Of a DNA stretch of 64,000 nucleotides, positions 2,476-63,140 are shown in pieces; position 1 is the stretch's first letter, and each line of letters opens with the position of its first letter. The stretch is from NCBI RefSeq assembly GCF_006345805.1, contig NC_043013.1, forward strand, positions 1,364,001-1,428,000, in the 5' to 3' direction. Both the position numbers and the translations under genes were made by a program. The notes under the pieces were generated by a model. The model was not told the DNA's origin and did not search any database. It saw only the letters and a program-made list of their open reading frames with translations. The stretch is from Octopus sinensis (lineage: Eukaryota).

Positions 2476-2955
2476 AAGTATAAATGTATCGATACTTCTA
2501 TTAACAGATCCAACTTACACAGTACAAACGAGAGAGAAAATGAAAGGTGAAGAAGAAAGATGTTATAAGTTCAACAGATGTTTCTGGGGACTCGAGATCC
2601 ATCATAATGTTTGTAGATGTTGTTCACAACATTATGTGACCGAGTTGGGAGCAATTAATATTGATAAATCGAACCTCCTTCATCAGGGTAGGAAAGATCA
2701 CAATGAAATGCAAGATCTTTTCTGAGTTTCCAGTTTTTGCCTTCTCTCGTTTTGCATGCAAACATAATTACATATTTTATATTTCGTTAGAGTTGACCTG
2801 TGAAAACTAATAAAAGAAAAAAATACAATTATAAATGATATCGTTTGTCCTACGATCTTGGTAATGTTTTTTTCTCCCGGAAGTGTGTGGTTATTAATCA
2901 AACAATTGAAGTTACTATATGCAAATTAGTTAACGGATAGAAACTAATTACTTAC

Positions 2956-3105
2956 CATATTTAGCACACCCCCATCCCATAGCCATGCACATGTCTCCTA
3001 TTTTCGGAATATTTGGTGGACCAATAGTAATCGGTTGAAAATCTTTGCTTGGTACTGGATTGGACATTTTCAATAATGCAATATCATTGTTTTTCTTATG
3101 TAGGT
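2956..3105 (-). CDS. S1A serine protease exon with catalytic Asp102
   Basis: Acceptor tttttcag, donor gtaagt, phase 1 to 1. Translates (D)LHKKNNDIALLKMSNPVPSKDFQPITIGPPNIPKIGDMCMAMGWGCAKY(G), containing the DIALL and C...GWG motifs. Confidence 0.95.
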
Positions 3106-6526: not shown

Positions 6527-7950
6527 TAGTTTTATTTTCATAGTGTGCTTTCACTTCACTACCAAGCGCAGCTCTGTGTGCCTTGGGTATGTGCTGTGAT
6601 TTGTTGTGATGCTCTGATAGTTATTGTATGGAAAGTGTTCTGCGTAGGATGTGTGCAGTGCCTAGTAGTGCAATTTTCTGTATGTTATATGTGTTTGTAA
6701 GTCCTGGTGTCATTGTTATGTATTTGTTTGAATATTTTTTTATCATGCCTAATGCACCTACTATGATAGGAATTGTTTCTGTTTTTAGATTCCACATTCT
6801 GGTTACCTCTATTTCCAGGTCTTTGTATTTTGAAAGTTTCTCCATTTCTTTTAGAGACACGTTGTCATCCGCTGGTATTGATACATCAATTAGAAAGCAT
6901 TTTTTTCCTTCATGATCTCTGACAACTATATCTGGTCTGTTGGCCTTAATTTCTCTATCTGTGTGTATCGGCATATCCCAGAGTATGGTTGCTTTCTCGT
7001 TTTCTGTGACCTTTTCTGGTGTGTGCCTATACCATCTTTTTTCTGTTGTTATTCCATAATGTTGGCATAGCTTCCAGTGTATGTAGGTTCCAACTCTGTC
7101 ATGTCTGTGAATATATTCCTTCTTAGCCAGAACTGAGCAGCCAGAGATAATATGATTTATTGTTTCTTGTCCATCTCCACATATTCTGCAGTTACTTGTA
7201 ATATTTCTTTTCATTACATGTTTTTGGTAATTTCCGGTGGGGAGGCTTTGGTCTTGTACTGCAATTAAAAATCCCTCTGTTTCTGCTTTGAGTCCTGAGC
7301 TTCTCAACCATTGCTGGGATTTTTCTTTGTCTATTTCTTTTGCATTTAGTTTAGTCCAGTATTTACAATGAAGGGGCTTTTCTGGCCATCGTTTTATCAT
7401 GGTTCTTTGCTGTTCTATTTTTAGTTTGGATTTCATTTGTTTTATAGCTTTTGTTGTTTCTTTCTTTTCTTCTTTCTTCTTCTTCTCTTCTTCTTCTTAT
7501 TCTTCTTCTCTTCTTCTTCTTCCTTCTTCTTCTTCTTCTTCTTTTCTTTTCTTCTTCTTCTTCTCTTCTTCTTCTTCTTCTTCTTCTTCATATTTATTAG
7601 GTGGTATGATTTCTTGTTTGTATTTGTCAGCTTCCTTAAATACTGAGAACAGTTTTTTGTTTTGCTCGTGTTTTGCCGCTATTTGTATCAGTTTTCCTTC
7701 CTTCTGAAGTAGATATATTTGCAATCCTGGTTATTTTATAGTAGTTTTCCAGCTGTATAAGGCCTCTACCACCTTCTATACGTTGTATATATAGTCTTTC
7801 TATGTCAGATTTTGGGTGATGCATCCTAGATCCTGTCATTATTTTTCTTGTTTTCCTATCTATTTTGGTCAGTTCATTTAGTGTCCAGTTAAGGATATTG
7901 TAGCTGCAGCTTATAACTGGGACAGCTAAAGTGTTAATCCCTATTGTCTT
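6524..7950 (-). mobile_element. R4/Dong-like non-LTR retrotransposon (RLE endonuclease), 5'-truncated, family 1
   Basis: ORF 6621-7436 has a CRIC..ETINHIISGC zinc knuckle, RHD, NRPDIV and FLIDVSIP..KE.EK..KY RLE motifs. Interrupted by (TTC)n; (ATT)n on both sides. Confidence 0.92.
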
Positions 7951-7982
7951 GTTTTATTATTTATCTTGTTTTATTATTATTA

Positions 7983-8057
<75 letters not shown>

Positions 8058-8080
8058 CATTATTATCATTATTATTATTA

Positions 8081-8129
<49 letters not shown>

Positions 8130-8160
8130 CATTATTATTATTATATTATTATTATTATTA

Positions 8161-8227
<67 letters not shown>

Positions 8228-8367
8228 CATTATTATTATTATTATTATTATTATCATTATTATTATTATTATATTATTATTATTATTATCATCATTATTA
8301 TTTTATTATTATCATATTATTATTATTATCATTATTATTATCATTATTATTATTATTATTATTATTA

Positions 8368-8401
<34 letters not shown>

Positions 8402-8495
8402 CATATTATTATTATTATCATTATTATTATTATTATATTATTATTATTATTATTAATTATTATTATTATTATGATTATTATTATTATTATTATTA

Positions 8496-8538
<43 letters not shown>

Positions 8539-8555
8539 CATCATTATTATTATTA

Positions 8556-8601
<46 letters not shown>

Positions 8602-8682
8602 CATTATTTTATTATCATTATTATTATTATCATTATTATTATTATCATTATTATTATTTTATTATTATTATTATTATTATTA

Positions 8683-8725
<43 letters not shown>

Positions 8726-8757
8726 CATCATCATTATTATTATCATTATTATTATTA

Positions 8758-8788
<31 letters not shown>

Positions 8789-9019
8789 CATTATTATTAT
8801 TATTTTTATTATTATTATCATCATTATTATTATTATTATCATTATATTATTATCATTATATTATTATTATTATTATTATTATCATTATTATTATATTATT
8901 ATTATTATTCATCATTATTATTATTATTATCATTATATTATTATCATCATTATTATTTATTATTATTATTATTATTATCATTATTATTATTATTATTATC
9001 ATCATTATTATTATTATTA

Positions 9020-9052
<33 letters not shown>

Positions 9053-9123
9053 CATTATTATTATTATCATTATTATTATTATCATTATTATTATTATCAT
9101 TATTATTATTATTATTATTATTA

Positions 9124-9157
<34 letters not shown>

Positions 9158-9272
9158 CATCATTATTATTATTATTATCATTATTATTATTATTATTATT
9201 ATCATTATATTATTATTATTATTATTATTATCATTATTATTATTATCATTATTATTATTATTATTATTATTA

Positions 9273-9315
<43 letters not shown>

Positions 9316-9383
9316 CATCATTATTATTATTATTATCATTATTATTATTATTATTATCATTAATATTATTATTATCATTATTA

Positions 9384-9416
<33 letters not shown>
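7951..9416. repeat. ~1.45-kb degenerate (ATT)n microsatellite with ATC interruptions
   Basis: Direct reading; source of the poly-I/L/Y ORFs. Confidence 0.98.
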
Positions 9417-9589
9417 TTAAAGCTTTAACCGGTTTCACATTTTATGCTAATTTTCAAAAAGTTGCAATAGAAAGACGTGGTTTATGACGCAGCTGTTTGC
9501 TTCTGGCTAGTGTTTGAAGCTATTTTTATAGGGAATTTATGGCTCAAACTGGTATATAAAAATGACTCTATTAAAATAGGGCGAGGTTC

Positions 9590-15737: not shown

Positions 15738-16087
15738 TTAATAATAATAATTTTTGACAAAACTATGATTAAAAAAATTGAGGAGGAGACATTGCTATTA
15801 ATACTAAGTTCGGTATTTGATTGATGTTTATTTTACCGATCGTAGTTAGGTAAGTAGCAAATTCTTATAATCTATTCTTTAATAATAATTTTGTCAACCT
15901 AATACCTACTTTATTGACCTTGGTAGAGTGTAAGTAAAAAAAAATTAATTTCAGTGGAATTTGATTTCAGAAAGTACAATGACACAACTAAATACCAGAA
16001 GGCATTCGTCCATTCATCAATTCTGACGAGCCATCGCCCCAAAGACAACAAAAATAACGACAACAAAGAGAACAATATTTAACTTAC

Positions 16088-16262
16088 TTTTCATTGACAT
16101 AAAGACAATGTGCCGCTGTGAGGACCCAATATTTAGTAATAAGCATGCCTCCACAGTTGAATGCTTTCCGTTTGTGTTTCGCAGTAATGGAGACCATCCA
16201 TGGCCAACGACCTTCCTCAGAGAGTTTGCCATCGACAATAACTGGGCTGGTCTCGACTTTCT
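16088..16262 (-). CDS. S1A serine protease exon: end of propeptide, mature N-terminus and catalytic His57
   Basis: Acceptor ttttcag, donor gtaagt, phase 1 to 2. Translates KVETSPV-IVDGKLSEEGRWPWMVSITAKHKRKAFNCGGMLITKYWVLTAAHCLYVNE(K), containing the WPW, CGG and WVLTAAHC motifs. Confidence 0.95.
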
Positions 16263-17227
16263 CTGAAAATATTGGCTTCGCATTCAGTTTAGCATTTACA
16301 ATTATATACAAATAAACACATTAAAATATTTATTTAAATCGTTATATGATTTTGGTAGGGGACTAATCGCAACCATACATACATACATTTCAAAATTTAA
16401 ATCTTGAAGTTAGCTTTAATCATAAAATTACATCTTTCAACTGTTAAAAGCATTTTGAATTTTTTTCTGTTTGGCAGCCATTTTTCAATTTTTTCAATTT
16501 CTGTTCCAATTGATTTCATATTTGATGTAATGATGTACTTTTGTATGTTAATCATTGACATAAAATCCATTTTCATTATAAATCAATAAGTAAGGAGTTA
16601 ATAGCTTTTAAATTTTCAAGTTTTGGGTAATTTTAGCCACAAACATTCATGCATGTCTCCATAGTAACAAGCTAAGCATGAGAACTCCTTTGTCTGCGAG
16701 AAAGCACATGTTCACAAATATCTATATACTCATTGAGGTAGTTGTGAGATGTGCTAAACATAACAGCTTAAGTTGGCCTTAAATCACGCACCCCAACTTT
16801 TTTGTTTTTGTGTTTGCATAATCTTATGAATTCCCGTTTGTAGAATACAAATTCGTTAAAATTTTCTGAAAGTTTCAAAAAGTAAAAAAAGTTATGAGGG
16901 TTTATAAGGCGTGCGAAAAGCAGAATCCTGCCGATATTTCATTCGTTTACAGTTGACAACATGTGCTGTCACGCACAAAATGACAGCTTCCAAATCTTGT
17001 TTTCTGACAGGGTAAAAATGAGCAAACTTTAAGCCTCTATAACTTTCTTTTAAAAAAGTTTCTGGGAAAAGTGAAATACCTCCTGAGATTTAGCGTGGAA
17101 AATTACATGAATACAATTAATAAAATGTTCAATAAACTTTGAAATTTCCACATGTGTAGAAAAGATCCGCTAAAGAGAATAGTCTATGTTGAGTTTTTAG
17201 ACTCAGTCGAGTTTCCTTAATTTCATA

Positions 17228-25364: not shown

Positions 25365-26126
25365 TATATATTCTTTTCAAACCTATAATGGAAATGGCAA
25401 AGGAGTATATTCGGCATATTTTGCTTTATGAGTTCAATAAAAGCAACAACGCAACGAAAAGTGGGAAGAATATTAACGCAGCATATGAGGACCAGACAAT
25501 AAGCATAAGCCAGTGTCAATGGTGGTTCCAGAGATTCCAAGCCGGATACTACAGCCTAGAAGACGAGTCCCATCCTGGAAGATCTGTAGAACGGACGAGG
25601 ATGTCTTGCAAATTCTGGTAGAACAAAATCACACCGTAACTGTTGAGGAACTAGCAGAGAAGCTTGGATTTGGTAATTCAGCCATTCATCGACACCTGCG
25701 TGCCATTGGAAAAGTCAGCAAATTGGGTCAATGGGTTCCTCACAAACTTTCCGAGTCTAATTTCGAACCACATACAGCCAGGATGACATTCCAAAGGCTG
25801 GAGCAGTTTGAATGGGAAACGATGCCCCACCCACATATTCGCCGGACATTGCCCCACCTGAGTATCATTTAATCCGCAGCCTTCAAAATCATTTGGACAG
25901 GAAAAATATGAATTCTGTAGACGAGGTCAGAACAGTGCTGGAGGAGTACTTTTCGCACCGGACAAGTGCATTTTGGAAGAAGGGCCTTGCAAGTCTATCA
26001 GGTAGATGGAAGAGCATTGTACACAATGAAGGAGAGTATATTTTAGATTAAAAAAGAACTTTGATTATCTTAATTTTGAAAACTAAGAGTATTAAAAAAC
26101 TACATTATTTATAGGATGGCCCAATA
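25365..26126 (+). mobile_element. Mariner transposon, internally deleted, left TIR lost
   Basis: MEMAKEYIRHILLYEF..WFQRF, WVPHKL and YSPDIAP motifs; right TIR cattatttataggatggcccaata. Confidence 0.92.
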
Positions 26127-39837: not shown

Positions 39838-40620
39838 TGGGTAGTCTTGTTTTTATCATGTGCTTTCACTTCACTACCGAGCGCAGTTCTGTGCGCCTTG
39901 GGTATGTACTGTGGTTTGTTGTGGTGCTCTTATTTTCACTGTATTGAAAGTGTTTTACGTAGCATGTGTGCGGCGCCTACTACAGCTATGTTCTGTATGT
40001 TATATATACTTGTAAGACCTAGTGATTTTGTTATGAATGTTTTTTTATCATAACTAATGCGCCTACTATAATAGGTATTGTTTCTGTTTTTAGGCTCCAC
40101 ATTCGAGTTACCTCTATTTCCAGATCTTGGTATTTTGAAAGTTTTTCCGTTTCTTTTAGAGAAATACTGTCATCTATTGGTATTGATACATCGATTAGAA
40201 AGAGTTTTTTTCCTTCGTGATCTCTGACAACGATATCCAGCCTAATGCTCTTAATTTCTCTATCTGTGTGCATTGGCATACCCCAGAGGATGGTTGTTTT
40301 CTCATTTTCTGTGACCTTTTCTGAGGTTTGCTTATATAATTTTGTTTCTTGTGTTATTCCATAGTGTTGGTATAGCTTCCAGTGCATATAGTTCCCAACT
40401 CTGTCGTGTCTGTGAATATATTCCTTCTTAATCAGGACTTGTCTGTCAGTATGATTTATTGTTTCTTCTCCATCACCCATATTCTGCCGTTACTTGCATT
40501 TCTTTTCATTACATGTTTTTGGTAATTTATGGTGGGAAGGCTTTGATCTTGTGCTGCAATTAAAAATCCTTCAGTCTCTGCTTTGAATCCTGAGCTTCTC
40601 AGCCATTGTTGGGATTTTGC
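39836..40620 (-). mobile_element. R4/Dong-like family 1 fragment
   Basis: ORF 40031-40480 homologous to 6621-7436; same 3' UTR; flanked by (ATT/ATC/GTT)n. Confidence 0.9.
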
Positions 40621-43330: not shown

Positions 43331-45535
43331 GGCGCAGGTGTGGCTGTGTGGTAAGTAGCTTGCTTACCTTACAACTGAAGAGTTCGTGCTGCTTAAGTCA
43401 CGTCTTTCGACGTGAAATATTGTACGTTTGAAGCTCGACTACAGGTAGGCGTTTGTTTTATTTTGGGGGGCTTAGTGGAGTTTGTTGCTCTGTATTTAAT
43501 AATTTTTGTTGAGCAACAATCTCCACTCTGCTCCAGACATTTGCCTGCCTGTGGTCGTGCGAAAAGCCTCACTTTGCAGTGAGAATTGTGCTTTTGAGGA
43601 GGCGTATCCCCTCCACAAATTTTCTTTTGTGAAAATTCTACTTGTGTGACTGTATTCGTGTGACTGGAAGTTCCATTGGAATTACCACAGGCAAGGAGTA
43701 CGAGGACAGCAAGAATTAATTTGTGTGCTGCGAAGGTGAACTAGAGTACCTTTATTCTTGTGGATTACCAGAGTGGCGGAATTGTGTTGCCGTGAATTGA
43801 ACTCTCTTCCTTCGTTCCCATTCTCTGCTCTGTCTTTCTGTTCTTTTTTGTGTTTTTATTGAACTTTTCTGAACTTTGTGTTGAACCTTTTTTGGAGACT
43901 TTCTATGTTTTTGCAAGTATGGCAACAGAGAAGGGTACTGTGCTGGAGTGGGAAATTTTACCCCCTAAGCAGTGGATAAAGGACCGTAATGAGAGAACGG
44001 TGGTGTTGAGGACATATTCCAAGTCCCTCGACACCATCACTGTGTTCCCTCAGGTCGAGATAGAGAAAGAGTTGGCAGAATACCAGCCAACTATCAAGTT
44101 TATTGCAAGGGTTGTAAAATTTGCAACAGTGTGGGTGCTATTTGACACCCCTGAGGAGGCTCACATTTTTGCTAACCAACCGCTGGAAGAGAAAAAAATT
44201 TTTGTTTCTCCCCACATATCGTGGGAAGAAATTGACAAGTGTCTGGGTGTGTGGGCTGACACACCCAGAGGACACTATCCGCCGGGGTCTGGGTGGCAGC
44301 GGAACCAGGCTCTTAAATGTTAAAATGCTTCCTGTGGCTGATTGGGTGGGGTCGAAAGCAATTTTGACCCTATGGACCCATCAGCCAAAGATCTGGCTTT
44401 TCCAGATTTCTTAAAGATGGCCGGTTCTAGGTATCCGGTGATCCTTGAGGGACGCCCCCCCCCAAGTGTCACCTGGAATCGGGCCACATAAAGAAGAACT
44501 GCTCCAAGAACCAAGCAAGGGTACTGGAGCAGTTAATAGATCTCCCTGTCCTCCCAAGAGAGGTTCCTGAATCTCTAGCGGAGGGAGAGGTAGAGAAAGT
44601 CGAGGGGGAGGTAAACTCCCCGAAAACAAAAGGAAAAAAAAGAAAGGTGGACAACAATGGTTGCACACCAATGGATCCTGAGGCGGCGGGAGGTAAGGAG
44701 GGATTTCCGAATATGACGGAAGAACTCCACCTTCTCGTCGTAAACAAAAAGAAAAAAAGGAAAAGGAAAAACGACGCATCGCCGGCGGTTGCTGGTGCAC
44801 CGGTGGCATGTTCCGAAACCCATTCGGTGGAACGTGATCCACTGGAAGAAGACCCCCTCCCAGTAGAAATGTTGAAGAACATGTGATTTTCTATCTCAGG
44901 GGAGGGGCTATAGAGAATTATATAGAAAGTTCCTTTGATAGTCGGGACCTGATAGACTCGACTTGTATTCCAGAGTGGCTGCTCGGGTACTGGAAGAAAG
45001 GAACCTCTACCATATAATGGACTCCTTCTCAAAGAAAGAATACAGAACATGTTTATGGGCCCCCAACTTGCGGTTCCTGGAATGCCTGCAGGAGGCAAGA
45101 AAGTTTATTAAGGGCTCATTTATGTAACAGGCTTATCGCCTATTAAATTGTTTTCAATTGTAGTGGACTTTTTAGTCCATAAAGTGTAAAAATTGTAAGA
45201 GGGTTAATACCTCATTCAGTATTTTTTAAAAAAAGAACAATGTTTTAGAGGAGCAAAAGTCGGCGGACGCTTTTCGTCTTCTCCCATCCTTATCATCCTT
45301 GTATCATTATCATTCACCTCATTAATGCCCGTGTCCAGCCCGCAAGCTACCTTACTCTATGTACTGCCTTTATGGCAAATTCGATAAAATAAAATAGATT
45401 GCTTACCAAACACATGATTCCGGGTTCAGTCCCACTGCGTGGTACCTTGGGCAAATGTCTTTTATAGCCTCGGGCCAACCAACGCCTTGTGAGAGGATTT
45501 GGTAGACAGAAACTGAAAGAAGCTTATCGTATATA
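43331..45535 (+). mobile_element. SINE family A split by a 2-kb insertion (head 43331-43368, remainder 45399-45535)
   Basis: Head stops at ttgcttacc and resumes after a second ttgcttacc with aaacacatgattccgggttcagtccc. Confidence 0.85.
43369..45398 (+). mobile_element. Non-autonomous L1/Tx1-like LINE derivative: 5' UTR, frameshifted ORF1, short remnant, 3' UTR and A-rich tail
   Basis: 9-bp TSD TTGCTTACC (43360-43368, 45399-45407); tail ataaaataaaat. ORF1-like text MATEKGTVLEWE..TVWVLFDTPEEAHIF..PTYRGKKLTSVWVCG plus a KKKKRKRK segment; no RT recognisable. Clade is inferred. Confidence 0.65.
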
Positions 45536-57298: not shown

Positions 57299-57343
<45 letters not shown>

Positions 57344-57395
57344 TATTATATTATTATTATCATTATTATTATTATTATTCATTATTATTATTATA

Positions 57396-57474
57396 TTGAC
57401 GTCGCACAGTGTACAATATCGTGAGGTTGTTGATTGGAGATATTGTCTACCGGGGGTTTGTACTGTTTGTCAAG

Positions 57475-57540
<66 letters not shown>

Positions 57541-57636
57541 CATTGTTATTATTAATATTGACGTCGCACAGTGTACAATATCGTGAGGTTGTTGATTGGA
57601 GATATTGTCTACCGGGGGTTTGTACTGTTTGTCAAG

Positions 57637-57639
<3 letters not shown>
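57396..57639 (+). repeat. Identical 82-bp unique segment duplicated (57396-57477, 57558-57639) within (ATT)n
   Basis: Direct reading, period 162. Confidence 0.95.
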
Positions 57640-57678
<39 letters not shown>

Positions 57679-58274: not shown

Positions 58275-58615
58275 TGTCTGACCTTTGCTTTGTATTTGTA
58301 CAACTTGACTCTAAGTCTCACCCAGAGACCTCAAGAGACAATGAGTTAGAAGTTCATGTTGGTGTTATGCCTAGGGTGCCATGTATATGGTTTTGTACAT
58401 AGTATTGTTCCAGAGAATGTTTAAGAGAATATAAGAAAATTATGAGTTTGTTTTAAAATTTGAGATCACATAGACAGTATTTTACGTAGGATATGGGCAG
58501 CTCCCACAAGCACTATTTTTTTAATTTCTGCCATTTTGGGGATTTCTGTATCTGAGCTAGGTAGCAATCAGCTCCTTTTGGTATCATTATCATTATTATT
58601 ATCATTATCATTATT

Positions 58616-58654
<39 letters not shown>

Positions 58655-59082
58655 ATTATTATTATTATTATTGAGTGAGAGAGCAGTTCTTGCTATCAAA
58701 GTGACACTGGGGTAAAATATGCGAAGCCCAGTATACCCATAATGACTACCCGTCTGATAAGGGTACACTAGGCACATGCATCACAACCATATGTGCGCGA
58801 CATGGTGATCTCATATTAAGATAAACAGCATATGACCTTGCAAGTGGGGCTCAGTTAGAATTTTCTTCTAGTCAAGTAAACCATCCCGCTCAAAAGGTCC
58901 CTGAATATAGGTTGTTTAAGGATATTGAACGAAACCCCCCTGTTTCCAGAGGTGAATTATTCAAACCCTAAAGAATGCCTCTCAACACACGGCTATGATG
59001 CTCCCCCACTACTTCTGCTCGTTATCAGAGATGCACATATCGTCAGCCACTAAAGGACATGCTCAACTGGTTAATGTCAAAC
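58275..59082 (-). mobile_element. Composite element copy Y
   Basis: Same order as copy X: R4-2 3' end 58275-58588, microsatellite linker, module 58671-59082. Confidence 0.8.
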
Positions 59083-59094
59083 CAAATAGGCATT

Positions 59095-60200
59095 CTATAA
59101 TCCAAGAATGTGGGATCATATCGTACAGGCGTACGATATAATCCGTAGCATGGCTAAGTTAGTTTTCCTCCTCTTGCCGTCTCTAAGTACAGTTTTGGCT
59201 TCCATGAGTTGATCCTTGGCATCTCTGCATTTACGTTTGCAAAAATGGAGTCCTGCTCATGTTGCAGGACTCCATTTTTCCCCAAATGTCCGTACACTGA
59301 CTGCGCGACTATTCCAGTCAATAATTTCCACAGGATATCGGCCTCTTATTGTCTACCGTATTGCCTTTTTCGATGCTTTTCAAGCATAGCCCTATCCTAC
59401 TCATTGTCAACCACCCTGTTGTTACTTGGTCGGCGTTTAATAAGGTATTGAGTTGTGTAGCTATTCGTGCATGACATTCACCAAATCTTTTAATCCAGTA
59501 GCCTTGAACTCCATCAGGTCCCGGGGTCTTCCAGTTGTCCATTTTTTGCTGATTTCCTTCACTTCCCTAACTGAAATGACTAGTTCTGCCTGTTTTGGAC
59601 AGACTACTGTTTGTTTCAGTTCTTTCAACCAATCAGCATCCTTCTTGTGCTCCTTGTCTTTGCCCCAGATGTCACTCCAAAACCTTTGACTTTTAATGTT
59701 ATCTGGTACAACTTTTCAACTGTTCACTCTTCATTTATTTCTTTTAGAATCTCTTCTGATCTACTCTAAATAATCTATTCTGCTGGTAACCCTTCATTCT
59801 TTGGTCGTATCTTACCATCTTTGTCTTCTTTGCAACGAGGCGCTGTTGCAGTTCCTCCATTACCACTTTCAGGTCCTTTCTTTCTATATCATACTCCCTG
59901 TTCAGTGCCCTCTATTTCTGTTCGCTTTTAACTACCTCCTTCTCTTTTCGGCCTAATACAGAAACGTCTTTCGAGAGCATATCGAACCCTACCTGGATTC
60001 GTCTTTCCCACCACGGATCTTTCCTTTTCTCACTCCCATTATATTTATTTTTCTTGACATCAACGCCCATATTTTCTGCTACAACAACACTTGCTGCCTT
60101 CATCAAATTATTTGTTTCTGTGATATTTTTTGCTCTCACGGATTTTACAATTTCATTCACATTTTTGGTTTCTTTGGTTCAATTCCCATCGATCAACTTT
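59095..60200 (-). mobile_element. R4-like LINE N-terminal/RT fragment
   Basis: NWKTPGPDGVQGYWIKRF, RPISC and CKRKCR..KDQL..KTNLA motifs, with stops and frameshifts. Confidence 0.85.
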
Positions 60201-60230
60201 TTACTACTACTACTACTACTACTACTACTA

Positions 60231-60303
<73 letters not shown>

Positions 60304-60358
60304 ACTGCTGGTACCACCACCACCACCACCACCACTGCTGCTACTGCTGCTGCTGCTG

Positions 60359-60430
<72 letters not shown>

Positions 60431-60450
60431 ACAATAATAATAATAATAAT
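60200..60450. repeat. Compound (CTA)/(CTG)/(CCA)/(ATA) microsatellite
   Basis: Direct reading. Confidence 0.95.
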
Positions 60451-60474
60451 TTTAAATATTTTTCTTTATTCCAG
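60426..60474 (+). promoter_or_regulatory. Branch point TACTAAC, AG-free zone, polypyrimidine tract and 3' splice site
   Basis: TACTAAC at 60426-60432; no AG dinucleotide until the acceptor at 60473-60474. Confidence 0.55.
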
Positions 60475-60478
60475 CAAA

Positions 60479-60727
60479 ATGGCTTTCTCTGGAATTTCAA
60501 TTATCGCGATAATTCTTCTTTCTGTATGTTTCGCTCACGGTGTAAATACTGGAAATGACAACATAAACACACACCCCAGGGATAAAGTCGATGTTTTCAG
60601 TAAATTCCTGAAGAATTTCAATTTGAAAGGAAATCTCTCGTTACCAATCCGTTCCATGGAATCCAGTCTGAGTAAATTCTATTCCCGATATTACTGCTCA
60701 TCCAAACGAACATGTAAGACGTCTTTG
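60479..60727 (+). CDS. Unrecognised secreted-protein precursor, first coding exon (83 codons; 97 aa to 60772 if unspliced)
   Basis: Acceptor tttctttattccag at 60474, caaaATGG start context, donor TTG|gtaaga. MAFSGISIIAIILLSVCFAHG is a typical signal peptide (A-x-G site), followed by VNTGNDNINTHPRDKVDVFSKFLKNFNLKGNLSLPIRSMESSLSKFYSRYYCSSKRTCKTSL. Confidence 0.7.
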
Positions 60728-60849
60728 GTAAGATTTCAGTTTCTAAAATTCTGTATTCTTCACATTTTCTGATAAATCTATTGGAGTTTGTTAAATCTGT
60801 GTAAATGTTTAATTTTCACGGTTTGAAATAAAAATCTTTCGCATGTGCA

Positions 60850-61225
60850 CGTGTGTGCATTCTTGCGTTTGTGTCTATGGGTGTGTGTGCATGCGCGTGT
60901 GTATGTGTGTCTCTGTCTGTGTGTGCGTGTGTATGCATGTGTGCGTATGAGTGTGTGTATTTATGTATGTGTATTTGTGTGTGTGTGTCTATATGTGTAT
61001 GTGTGCATGTGTGTGTGTATGTATGTGTGTCTGCGTGTGCATGTGTGTCTGCGTGTGCATGTGTGTGTTTGTGTGCATGTGTGCGTGTGCATGTGTGTCT
61101 GCGTGTGCATGTGTGTGTTTGTGTATGTGTGTCTGTGTCTATGTGTGTGTGCATGTGTGTGTGTCTGTGTGTGTGCGCGTTTATGTGTGTATGTGCGTGT
61201 GCGCGTGTCTGCGCGTGCAGCCATT
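60850..61225. repeat. Degenerate (TG)n tract with recurring gtgtctgcgtgtgcatgt units
   Basis: Direct reading. Confidence 0.9.
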
Positions 61226-61899: not shown

Positions 61900-62079
61900 G
61901 TATGCTTGGGGCTAAATCACTATCAAGTTCTGAATTGTAATTATATGTTTCAATCAGAAAAATTCAGGTAAAAAAAAGGTAACTAAGCTGAAATGAAAAA
62001 GTGGAAAAGTTAAAGCAAGCTGCTTACCCTGAAATAAAGAAACGGGTGCAGGATTTAAAAAAGAAAATGAACGTAAGCC

Positions 62080-63140
62080 AAGATATGTTAAATCAAGCAT
62101 AATGTTGAAGATCTTTCGCGCATACGGCATTCTCGAAGTACTAGTTCTTACCATTGCAAAGACCTTCGAGAAAACCAGAGTACATGTGTTGTCATCTAAC
62201 GGAGAAATAGAATTCTTTTAAATACTAGCTAGTGTGCTACAAGGAGACACGCTTGCACCTTGTCTGTTTGCAATATTATCGGATTATGTGATGCGATGGG
62301 CTGTAGGCAACAGTGGCGAAGGCCTTGGCTTCACCTTTGACCGGCAAGGATTGCAGAGAGTACCAGCAGTAAGCATCACAGACCTGGACTTCGCAGATGA
62401 TGTAGCACATGCATCTGATGAAACAAATCGAGCTCAACAGCTGCTCAGCAGAGTAGAGACATCAGCTGCCAAAACTGAACTGTACACAAATGTCAAGAAA
62501 ACCGAATACATGACTTTCAACCAATCAAGGGATGCTGAACTGTTTGCTTTGAGTGGTTCCGAATTGAATGTTGTTAAAGACTTCATGTACTTAGGTGGTT
62601 GGATGAGCAGTTCGGAAGCAGACATCAAGATCAGGAAGGCACAAGCATAGACAGCCTCTCACAGACTAAAGAATGTCCTGAACTCCAAATTGCTCCGGCG
62701 AATCACAATCAAGCTGGTCATTGCAGCTGTCAAATCGGTGCTGTTATAGGACAGTAAAACATAGACACTGGTAAAGAAATTATCAAACGGGTTAAATGGA
62801 TGATACCCAAGGATGCTACGAATGGCCCTAAATGTGAAATAGCAGCCACATATGACAAATGAATGCCTTAATGAAGACCTGCCGAAAGTTAGCGAGAATA
62901 TCATGCAAAGATGGCTGCAATTATCTGGTCACTGCATGCGCCACGCTGAGCTGGAAGCTTCCAGATTAGTTTGTGGAAAGCAGCTCCTGGTGATGTAAGA
63001 AGATTTGGAAAACGTCGTCAACTTGACAACTTGATTGCTGACACTGACCGGGAATGTATCCAGGAGCCCGAGGCAGCGATGATGGATTGAGAAGTGTGGT
63101 GGGTGGATTTTGTTGCTGCGGCCCGGGCTGGAACCCAGCC
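62080..63140 (+). mobile_element. RTE-type LINE RT relic
   Basis: KIFRAYGI..VLQGDTLAPCLF..DLDFADDVA..F.YLGGW motifs, with stops downstream. Confidence 0.9.

Follow-up and report, generated by a model that had tools for sequence, protein, structure and literature searches.

Structure of the candidate frame and its surroundings

The candidate open reading frame (ORF) is located on the plus strand near the right end of a stretch of 64,000 nucleotides, which was analyzed in its whole length and is referred to here as the window. Its start codon, ATG (60479-60481), sits 4 nt 3' of an acceptor-like AG and is embedded in the context CAAAATGG, with A at -3 and G at +4. The acceptor-like site (60458-60474, plus strand) consists of TTTTTCTTTATT, in which 11 of 12 positions are pyrimidines, followed by CCAG, the AG being at 60473-60474. 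A branch-point-like heptamer, TACTAAC, can be read directly at 60426-60432 (plus strand), 43 nt 5' of this AG, and it arises where a (TAC)n microsatellite meets TAAC, being a by-product of the repeat. Upstream of the ATG the frame is open for 9 codons only, and entry from a prior exon is permitted only through the single base C 60475. Residues 1-21 (60479-60541, plus strand), MAFSGISIIAIILLSVCFAHG, form a signal-peptide-like segment that passed a heuristic combining a hydrophobic core with the -3/-1 positions: its hydrophobic core spans 13 uncharged residues, positions -3 to -1 are A-H-G, and its n-region carries no basic residue.

The signal-peptide-like segment is followed by a polar region of 62 aa (residues 22-83; 60542-60727, plus strand), VNTGND...YYCSSKRTCKTSL, containing one NLS sequon (N52-L-S), single Arg residues at positions 34, 58 and 70, two Cys and one KR. 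The motif YYCSSKRTC corresponds to residues 71-79, with K76-R77 lying between C73 and C79. After codon 83 there is a donor-like site in phase 0, TTG/GTAAGA (60728-60733, plus strand). An additional internal donor-like GTAAGA is found at 60714-60719 (plus strand); its use would end the exon in phase 1, one base into the Cys79 codon. If unspliced, the frame reads through to a TGA stop codon at 60770-60772 (plus strand) and encodes 97 aa, and an AATAAA sequence is present 3' of this stop (60827-60832, plus strand). The strong acceptor, good start context and 21-aa segment ending in A-H-G that were reported in the preliminary description of this DNA are all present in the sequence and its translation, as are the 62-aa region with its sequon, single Arg sites, YYCSSKRTC and GTAAGA donor; the second GTAAGA at 60714, the TACTAAC heptamer and the AATAAA signal are features that go beyond it.

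The GC content of the window is 31-43% over most of its length and drops to 14.5% in a single block of microsatellites; microsatellites and LINE debris are abundant. In this context, the candidate occupies a unique island of approximately 420 nt flanked by two microsatellites and two decayed LINE fragments. Directly 5' of it there is a compound microsatellite of about 250 nt, (TAC)n(TGC)n(ACC)n(TAC)n(AAT)n (60202-60450), and directly 3' a degenerate (TG)n microsatellite (60870-61217). Further upstream lies a decayed, 5'-truncated LINE copy with frameshifts (approximately 58460-60180, minus strand), carrying an ...NWKTPGPDG... segment, the start of a reverse transcriptase and the C-terminal tail of the family; its fragments gave no Pfam match, and the family was called from recognizable motifs and from a likeness to the zf-RVT ORF at 6624-7436. 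Downstream, a decayed non-LTR reverse-transcriptase fragment (62033-63100, plus strand) matched Pfam RVT_1 on 62234-62647 (E = 6.5e-08). The GC content of the candidate is 37.5%, vs. 11-29% in its short unique flanks. No plausible next exon was seen in the 3.2 kb between the candidate and the end of the window, and no plus-strand coding exon was recognized upstream, where the DNA consists of the minus-strand LINE and microsatellites.

There is no second copy or paralogue of the candidate exon within the 64-kb window, and no inverted, terminal or direct repeats bracket it. A reading as a repeat or MITE was rejected, given that no inverted or direct repeats surround the candidate; nor does it show the marks of a transposable element, having no Pfam match, one copy in the window and no bracketing repeats. 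A search of the whole window against Rfam found nothing. Elsewhere in the window, a 162-nt unit is present in 2.3 copies with 96% identity at 57314-57678, and each unit includes (TTA)n runs. Both strands carry overlapping long ORFs (157, 143 and 209 aa) at 43850-44323 (plus) and 44411-45098 (minus), with no Pfam match; the plus-strand ORF at 43850-44323 is protein-like in composition and could be part of an unclassified mobile element.

The divergent S1 protease that had been described about 44 kb from the candidate was confirmed by Pfam: it runs leftward and the candidate rightward. Two minus-strand exons, separated by about 13 kb, matched the Trypsin family (E = 8e-13 and 3e-06). The exon at 16087-16311 covers profile positions 1-45, starts with IVDGKL... 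and contains the His motif TAAHC, and the exon at 2951-3100 covers positions 85-131 and contains the Asp motif NNDIALL (DIALL). The exon with the catalytic Ser (GDSGG) is outside the window, and that for profile positions 46-84 was not located. The best match of the trypsin was an 80-aa UniRef fragment of O. bimaculoides, 90% identical, which marks the DNA as that of an Octopus-like genome; this entry reads through the donor site (…CLYVNEM), which is an artefact of the gene model.

The large intron of the protease holds a 1.5-kb microsatellite block of the trinucleotide type (7931-9487), with 14.5% GC, in which runs of I, L and Y make up 'ORFs' as long as 518 aa. The same intron contains one of three copies of the C-terminal part of a single LINE family (6621-7436, 40031-40480 and 58469-58567, all on the minus strand), which share a ...GALGMIKK... 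/ ...GTAHILRRTLSIQ-type tail; the copy at 6621-7436 has an intact ORF of 271 aa and matched Pfam zf-RVT with E = 2.9e-05, just under the gathering score. A 119-aa ORF at 25513-25872 (plus strand) gave helix-turn-helix matches (HTH_11, E = 4.5e-05, and others) and, by resemblance, may be the N-terminal, DNA-binding portion of a transposase of the mariner/Tc1 type. LINE pieces, this transposase-like ORF and microsatellites are found between the protease and the candidate.

Relatives, coding statistics and chance expectation

Neither the 83-aa nor the 97-aa product of the candidate matched any Pfam family. A word-index search of 5.8 billion protein clusters and a sequence search of the PDB gave no match, and a back-translated scan of metagenome contigs revealed no candidate locus. 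An exhaustive phmmer search of 1.84 billion representative proteins returned two matches only, with E about 8e-5, which were rejected as homologues since they are translated tandem repeats aligning, in several stretches, only to the hydrophobic residues 8-30. These two proteins (P0002 and P0003, of 371 and 736 aa) consist of near-identical tandem units that resemble translated satellite DNA, and they show that the reference library includes spurious ORF translations attracting hydrophobic queries. There is no relative in Pfam or the PDB and no credible one in the protein libraries. It must be noted that this absence weighs little, given that the libraries hold hardly any cephalopod protein, the trypsin of the window itself finding one 80-aa match of O. 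bimaculoides. A full-text literature search for four peptide strings of the candidate found none of them, and its tryptic peptides are absent from the supplementary files of a single study on the salivary glands of O. vulgaris, a weak negative because the species may differ.

The coding potential of the candidate was evaluated by an amino-acid log-likelihood ratio (LLR) comparing average-proteome with random-translation composition, which was calibrated on 219 chance ORFs of the window. The candidate scored -0.156 bits per residue over its 83 aa and -0.185 over the 62-aa part, with a median of -0.123 for the chance ORFs; 61-74% of these lie above it. The two trypsin exons reached +0.04 and +0.10 and transposon ORFs +0.02 and +0.16, and the top ranks were taken by LINE fragments, from which it follows that the measure does detect real coding sequence. 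The Fickett TESTCODE score, in which the ranking and not the absolute thresholds is relied on, was 0.56 when 83 codons of the candidate were taken and 0.45 when 97 were, both of which fall in the 'non-coding' range, 0.83 for the trypsin exons and 0.95-0.995 for the transposon ORFs; 77% of the chance ORFs scored higher than the candidate. At codon position 1, the candidate has 0.18 G and 0.30 T, and the trypsin exons 0.29 G and 0.19 T. The candidate therefore lacks both coding-type composition and codon-position asymmetry, with the limited power that is given by 249 nt and by a small set of controls, namely two exons and some transposon ORFs. A noise-like composition is also possible for young, lineage-specific genes and for propeptides.

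There is, at most, weak hydrophobic order in the 62-aa region. Its hydrophobicity has peaks at 180 degrees, with z = 2.8-3.1 on two scales, and at 100 degrees, with z = 2.7 on the Eisenberg scale and only 0.7 on the Kyte-Doolittle scale; the family-wise p is 0.02-0.04. The period of two residues along 60542-60727 to which the 180-degree peak corresponds may mirror a 6-nt regularity at the DNA level instead of a structural trait of the protein. In the same part, the mean alpha-helical hydrophobic moment was above that of shuffles (z = 2.6), and 0.5% of the chance ORFs reached its value. Alpha-helical amphipathicity was nevertheless rejected as support, since the signal was lost when the scale was changed. 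AlphaFold2, run without an alignment, gave a pLDDT of 52 and no confident fold, which is uninformative either way.

Each signal of the candidate is, taken alone, common in T-rich, repeat-rich DNA. About 20-30 frames of 97-codon size are expected per 64 kb of such DNA, and 33 non-repetitive ATG ORFs with a length of 80 aa or more were counted in the window. Two of them are signal-peptide-like by the heuristic, i.e., the candidate and a 95-aa ATG ORF at 6628 (plus strand). The latter is antisense to the LINE ORF and provides an example of a chance look-alike. Simulated windows contained 0.33-0.52 signal-peptide-like ORFs of at least 80 aa per 64 kb. Acceptor-like sites defined by at least 11 of 12 pyrimidines, N and YAG occurred 34 times when both strands were counted (128 kb), at a density of 0.27 per kb per strand, rising to 0.9 per kb per strand when at least 10 of 12 pyrimidines were accepted. 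Both strands together contain 29 GTAAGA hexamers, and GTRAG is present at 1.46 per kb per strand.

The combination of these signals is rare by chance. Of the 66 non-repetitive ATG ORFs that are 60 aa or longer, four are preceded by an acceptor-like site at a distance of 30 nt or less and 10 have a GTRAG after codon 40, and signals of both kinds, one on each side, are present in one, which is the candidate itself. The conjunction of an ORF of at least 80 aa, a signal-peptide-like start, an acceptor no more than 30 nt upstream and a GTRAG inside the ORF was obtained about 0.0027 times per 64 kb under a Markov-3 null of the whole window (in 2 of 736 simulations) and, per strand, under a local T-rich Markov-2 null (in 2 of 749), values which are optimistic because the criteria were set post hoc and real DNA is more heterogeneous than the nulls. 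In a genome of 2-3 Gb, they still imply chance conjunctions on the order of a hundred. As a rough estimate, real signal-peptide first exons of such a layout are about as numerous genome-wide as chance ones, and, both being similar in number, the signals alone leave the odds near even.

Interpretation of the candidate

On balance, the candidate is best explained, with somewhat better than even probability, as a chance ORF in T-rich, repeat-flanked non-coding DNA, either intergenic or intronic, with fortuitous splice-like borders. This reading is based on the frequencies of the single signals, on the noise-like coding statistics and on the relatives search, which found none. Under the mechanism we propose, the T-rich strand would provide frequent TTN, ATT and CTT codons, and the resulting hydrophobic runs after an ATG would mimic signal peptides; the same T-richness would produce pyrimidine tracts ending in AG, and GTAAG, a common pentamer, could supply a donor-like site by chance. 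No product would then be made, or at most a fortuitous, unselected exon of a non-coding transcript, and we infer that the candidate is neither expressed nor translated. Several observations speak against chance, namely the conjunction with the phase-0 G/GTAAGA, at an optimistic 0.003 or so per 64 kb under both nulls, the good start context, the TACTAAC 43 nt before the AG, the weakly non-random order of hydrophobicity, a GC content above that of the flanks and the small number of coding controls. With respect to the interpretation as a secreted protein, the testable evidence leans against the preliminary description.

The foremost alternative, which we consider unlikely, is that a genuine gene begins its coding sequence here and that the product is an orphan, lineage-restricted protein, either secreted or a type-I membrane protein. 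Splicing would then join a 5'-UTR exon to 60475, with translation starting at 60479, cleavage in the ER after A-H-G and a phase-0 frame running on into exons to the right of the window; a role of K76-R77 as a processing site, or a disulphide between C73 and C79, would have to be supposed in addition. All expected signals are indeed found in the right order and phase, a conjunction for which chance gives the above optimistic 0.0027 per 64 kb, and the candidate has one copy in the window, no recognizable transposon piece and a weak, non-random hydrophobic periodicity. Many novel lineage-specific genes have also been reported in octopod genomes (PMC7656900). However, its coding statistics match those of chance ORFs while true coding controls stand out, no homologue was found even with O. 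bimaculoides UniRef proteins included, the n-region has no basic residue, and no downstream exon was seen in 3.2 kb. The absence of its tryptic peptides from the supplements of the O. vulgaris study points weakly in the same direction, since the species may differ; AlphaFold2 gave no confident fold, which is uninformative without an alignment. Slightly less probable again is the more specific proposal of a new octopod-restricted secreted protein or peptide precursor, perhaps arisen de novo from repeat-flanked non-coding DNA, the remainder of which would lie beyond the window; such a de novo origin would account for the noise-like composition. An exon of another kind appears improbable. It might be internal to a gene, with the AG at 60474 as its in-phase point of entry and the hydrophobic run as a transmembrane helix, or else a spliced exon of a non-coding RNA or an exonised stretch of intron with an incidental ORF. 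The splice-like signals are statistically the rarest part of the conjunction, with the acceptor in four of the 66 ORFs, noise-like coding statistics would suit a non-coding exon, and the upstream frame, open for 9 codons, does permit entry, if only through the single base C 60475; on the other hand, no upstream plus-strand coding exon was recognized, nor any homologue with a membrane-protein architecture.

Two further explanations are both very improbable, and to the same degree. One of them, raised in the preliminary description, is that of a gland-specific secreted peptide precursor in a venom or salivary neighbourhood, co-regulated with the S1 protease. Its background was well founded, since serine proteases dominate the posterior-salivary-gland-specific expression in some octopods and octopod genomes are reported to be rich in novel, lineage-specific genes (PMC7656900), and the window does contain a bona fide trypsin-family gene. 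Nevertheless, co-occurrence in one window is the sole support for the locus itself: the two features are about 44 kb apart on opposite strands, with LINE, transposon-like and microsatellite DNA between them, no second secreted-protein gene or tandem protease copy was found in the window, and the peptide matches no described family. The other explanation is a relic ORF in a fragment of an uncharacterised repeat or transposon, in favour of which stands its position among LINE debris and microsatellites; against it stand the single copy within the 64-kb window, the lack of bracketing terminal or direct repeats and of any match in Pfam or other protein collections, and a composition unlike that of the transposon ORFs of the window, which score as coding.

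If the candidate were real, it would be one more orphan secreted protein in an octopod genome already reported to be rich in lineage-specific genes, and its interest would rest on its site of expression and on the full protein. As it stands, the case calls for caution, in that a tidy, splice-bordered, signal-peptide-like ORF can arise by chance in T-rich, repeat-rich cephalopod DNA. Sequence signals by themselves do not prove a gene, chance look-alikes being frequent enough to make them insufficient for a gene call, and a trypsin gene within 64 kb does not make a venom locus.

Comparison with known systems

The candidate shares with generic eukaryotic secretory precursors, as far as can be judged from the sequence, the initial Met, the 13-residue uncharged core, the small residues at -3 and -1 (A-H-G) and a polar region with an N-X-S sequon and two Cys, and it differs from them in an n-region without basic residue and in its noise-like coding statistics. 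Neuropeptide and prohormone precursors are similar to it in the signal-peptide-like start, the spacer and a Cys-x5-Cys arrangement with K-R (residues 73-79). In contrast to these precursors, the K-R of the candidate lies inside a putative loop and does not flank it, and there is no Gly amidation signal: a single K-R was found, with no G-K/R-R motif, no repeated unit and no Pfam precursor family. The likeness to peptides of the CCAP, vasopressin/oxytocin and allatostatin-C types is one which we take to be a lead only; an assignment to the CCAP, vasopressin or allatostatin-C type was rejected, because the Cys spacing and the motif do not fit and no matches were obtained.

With the proteins of the cephalopod posterior salivary gland, the candidate shares only the neighbourhood, i.e., a trypsin-family gene 44 kb away, and it has no sequence similarity to any described family and no tandem arrangement. 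Finally, it can be compared with chance ORFs, de novo and proto-gene candidates among them, of AT-rich non-coding metazoan DNA. It differs from these in the well-placed splice-like signals on both of its sides (one of 66 ORFs in the window), but it is like them in its length, in its flanking repeats, in the lack of detected homologues and in a composition rich in S, K, N, F, L and I.
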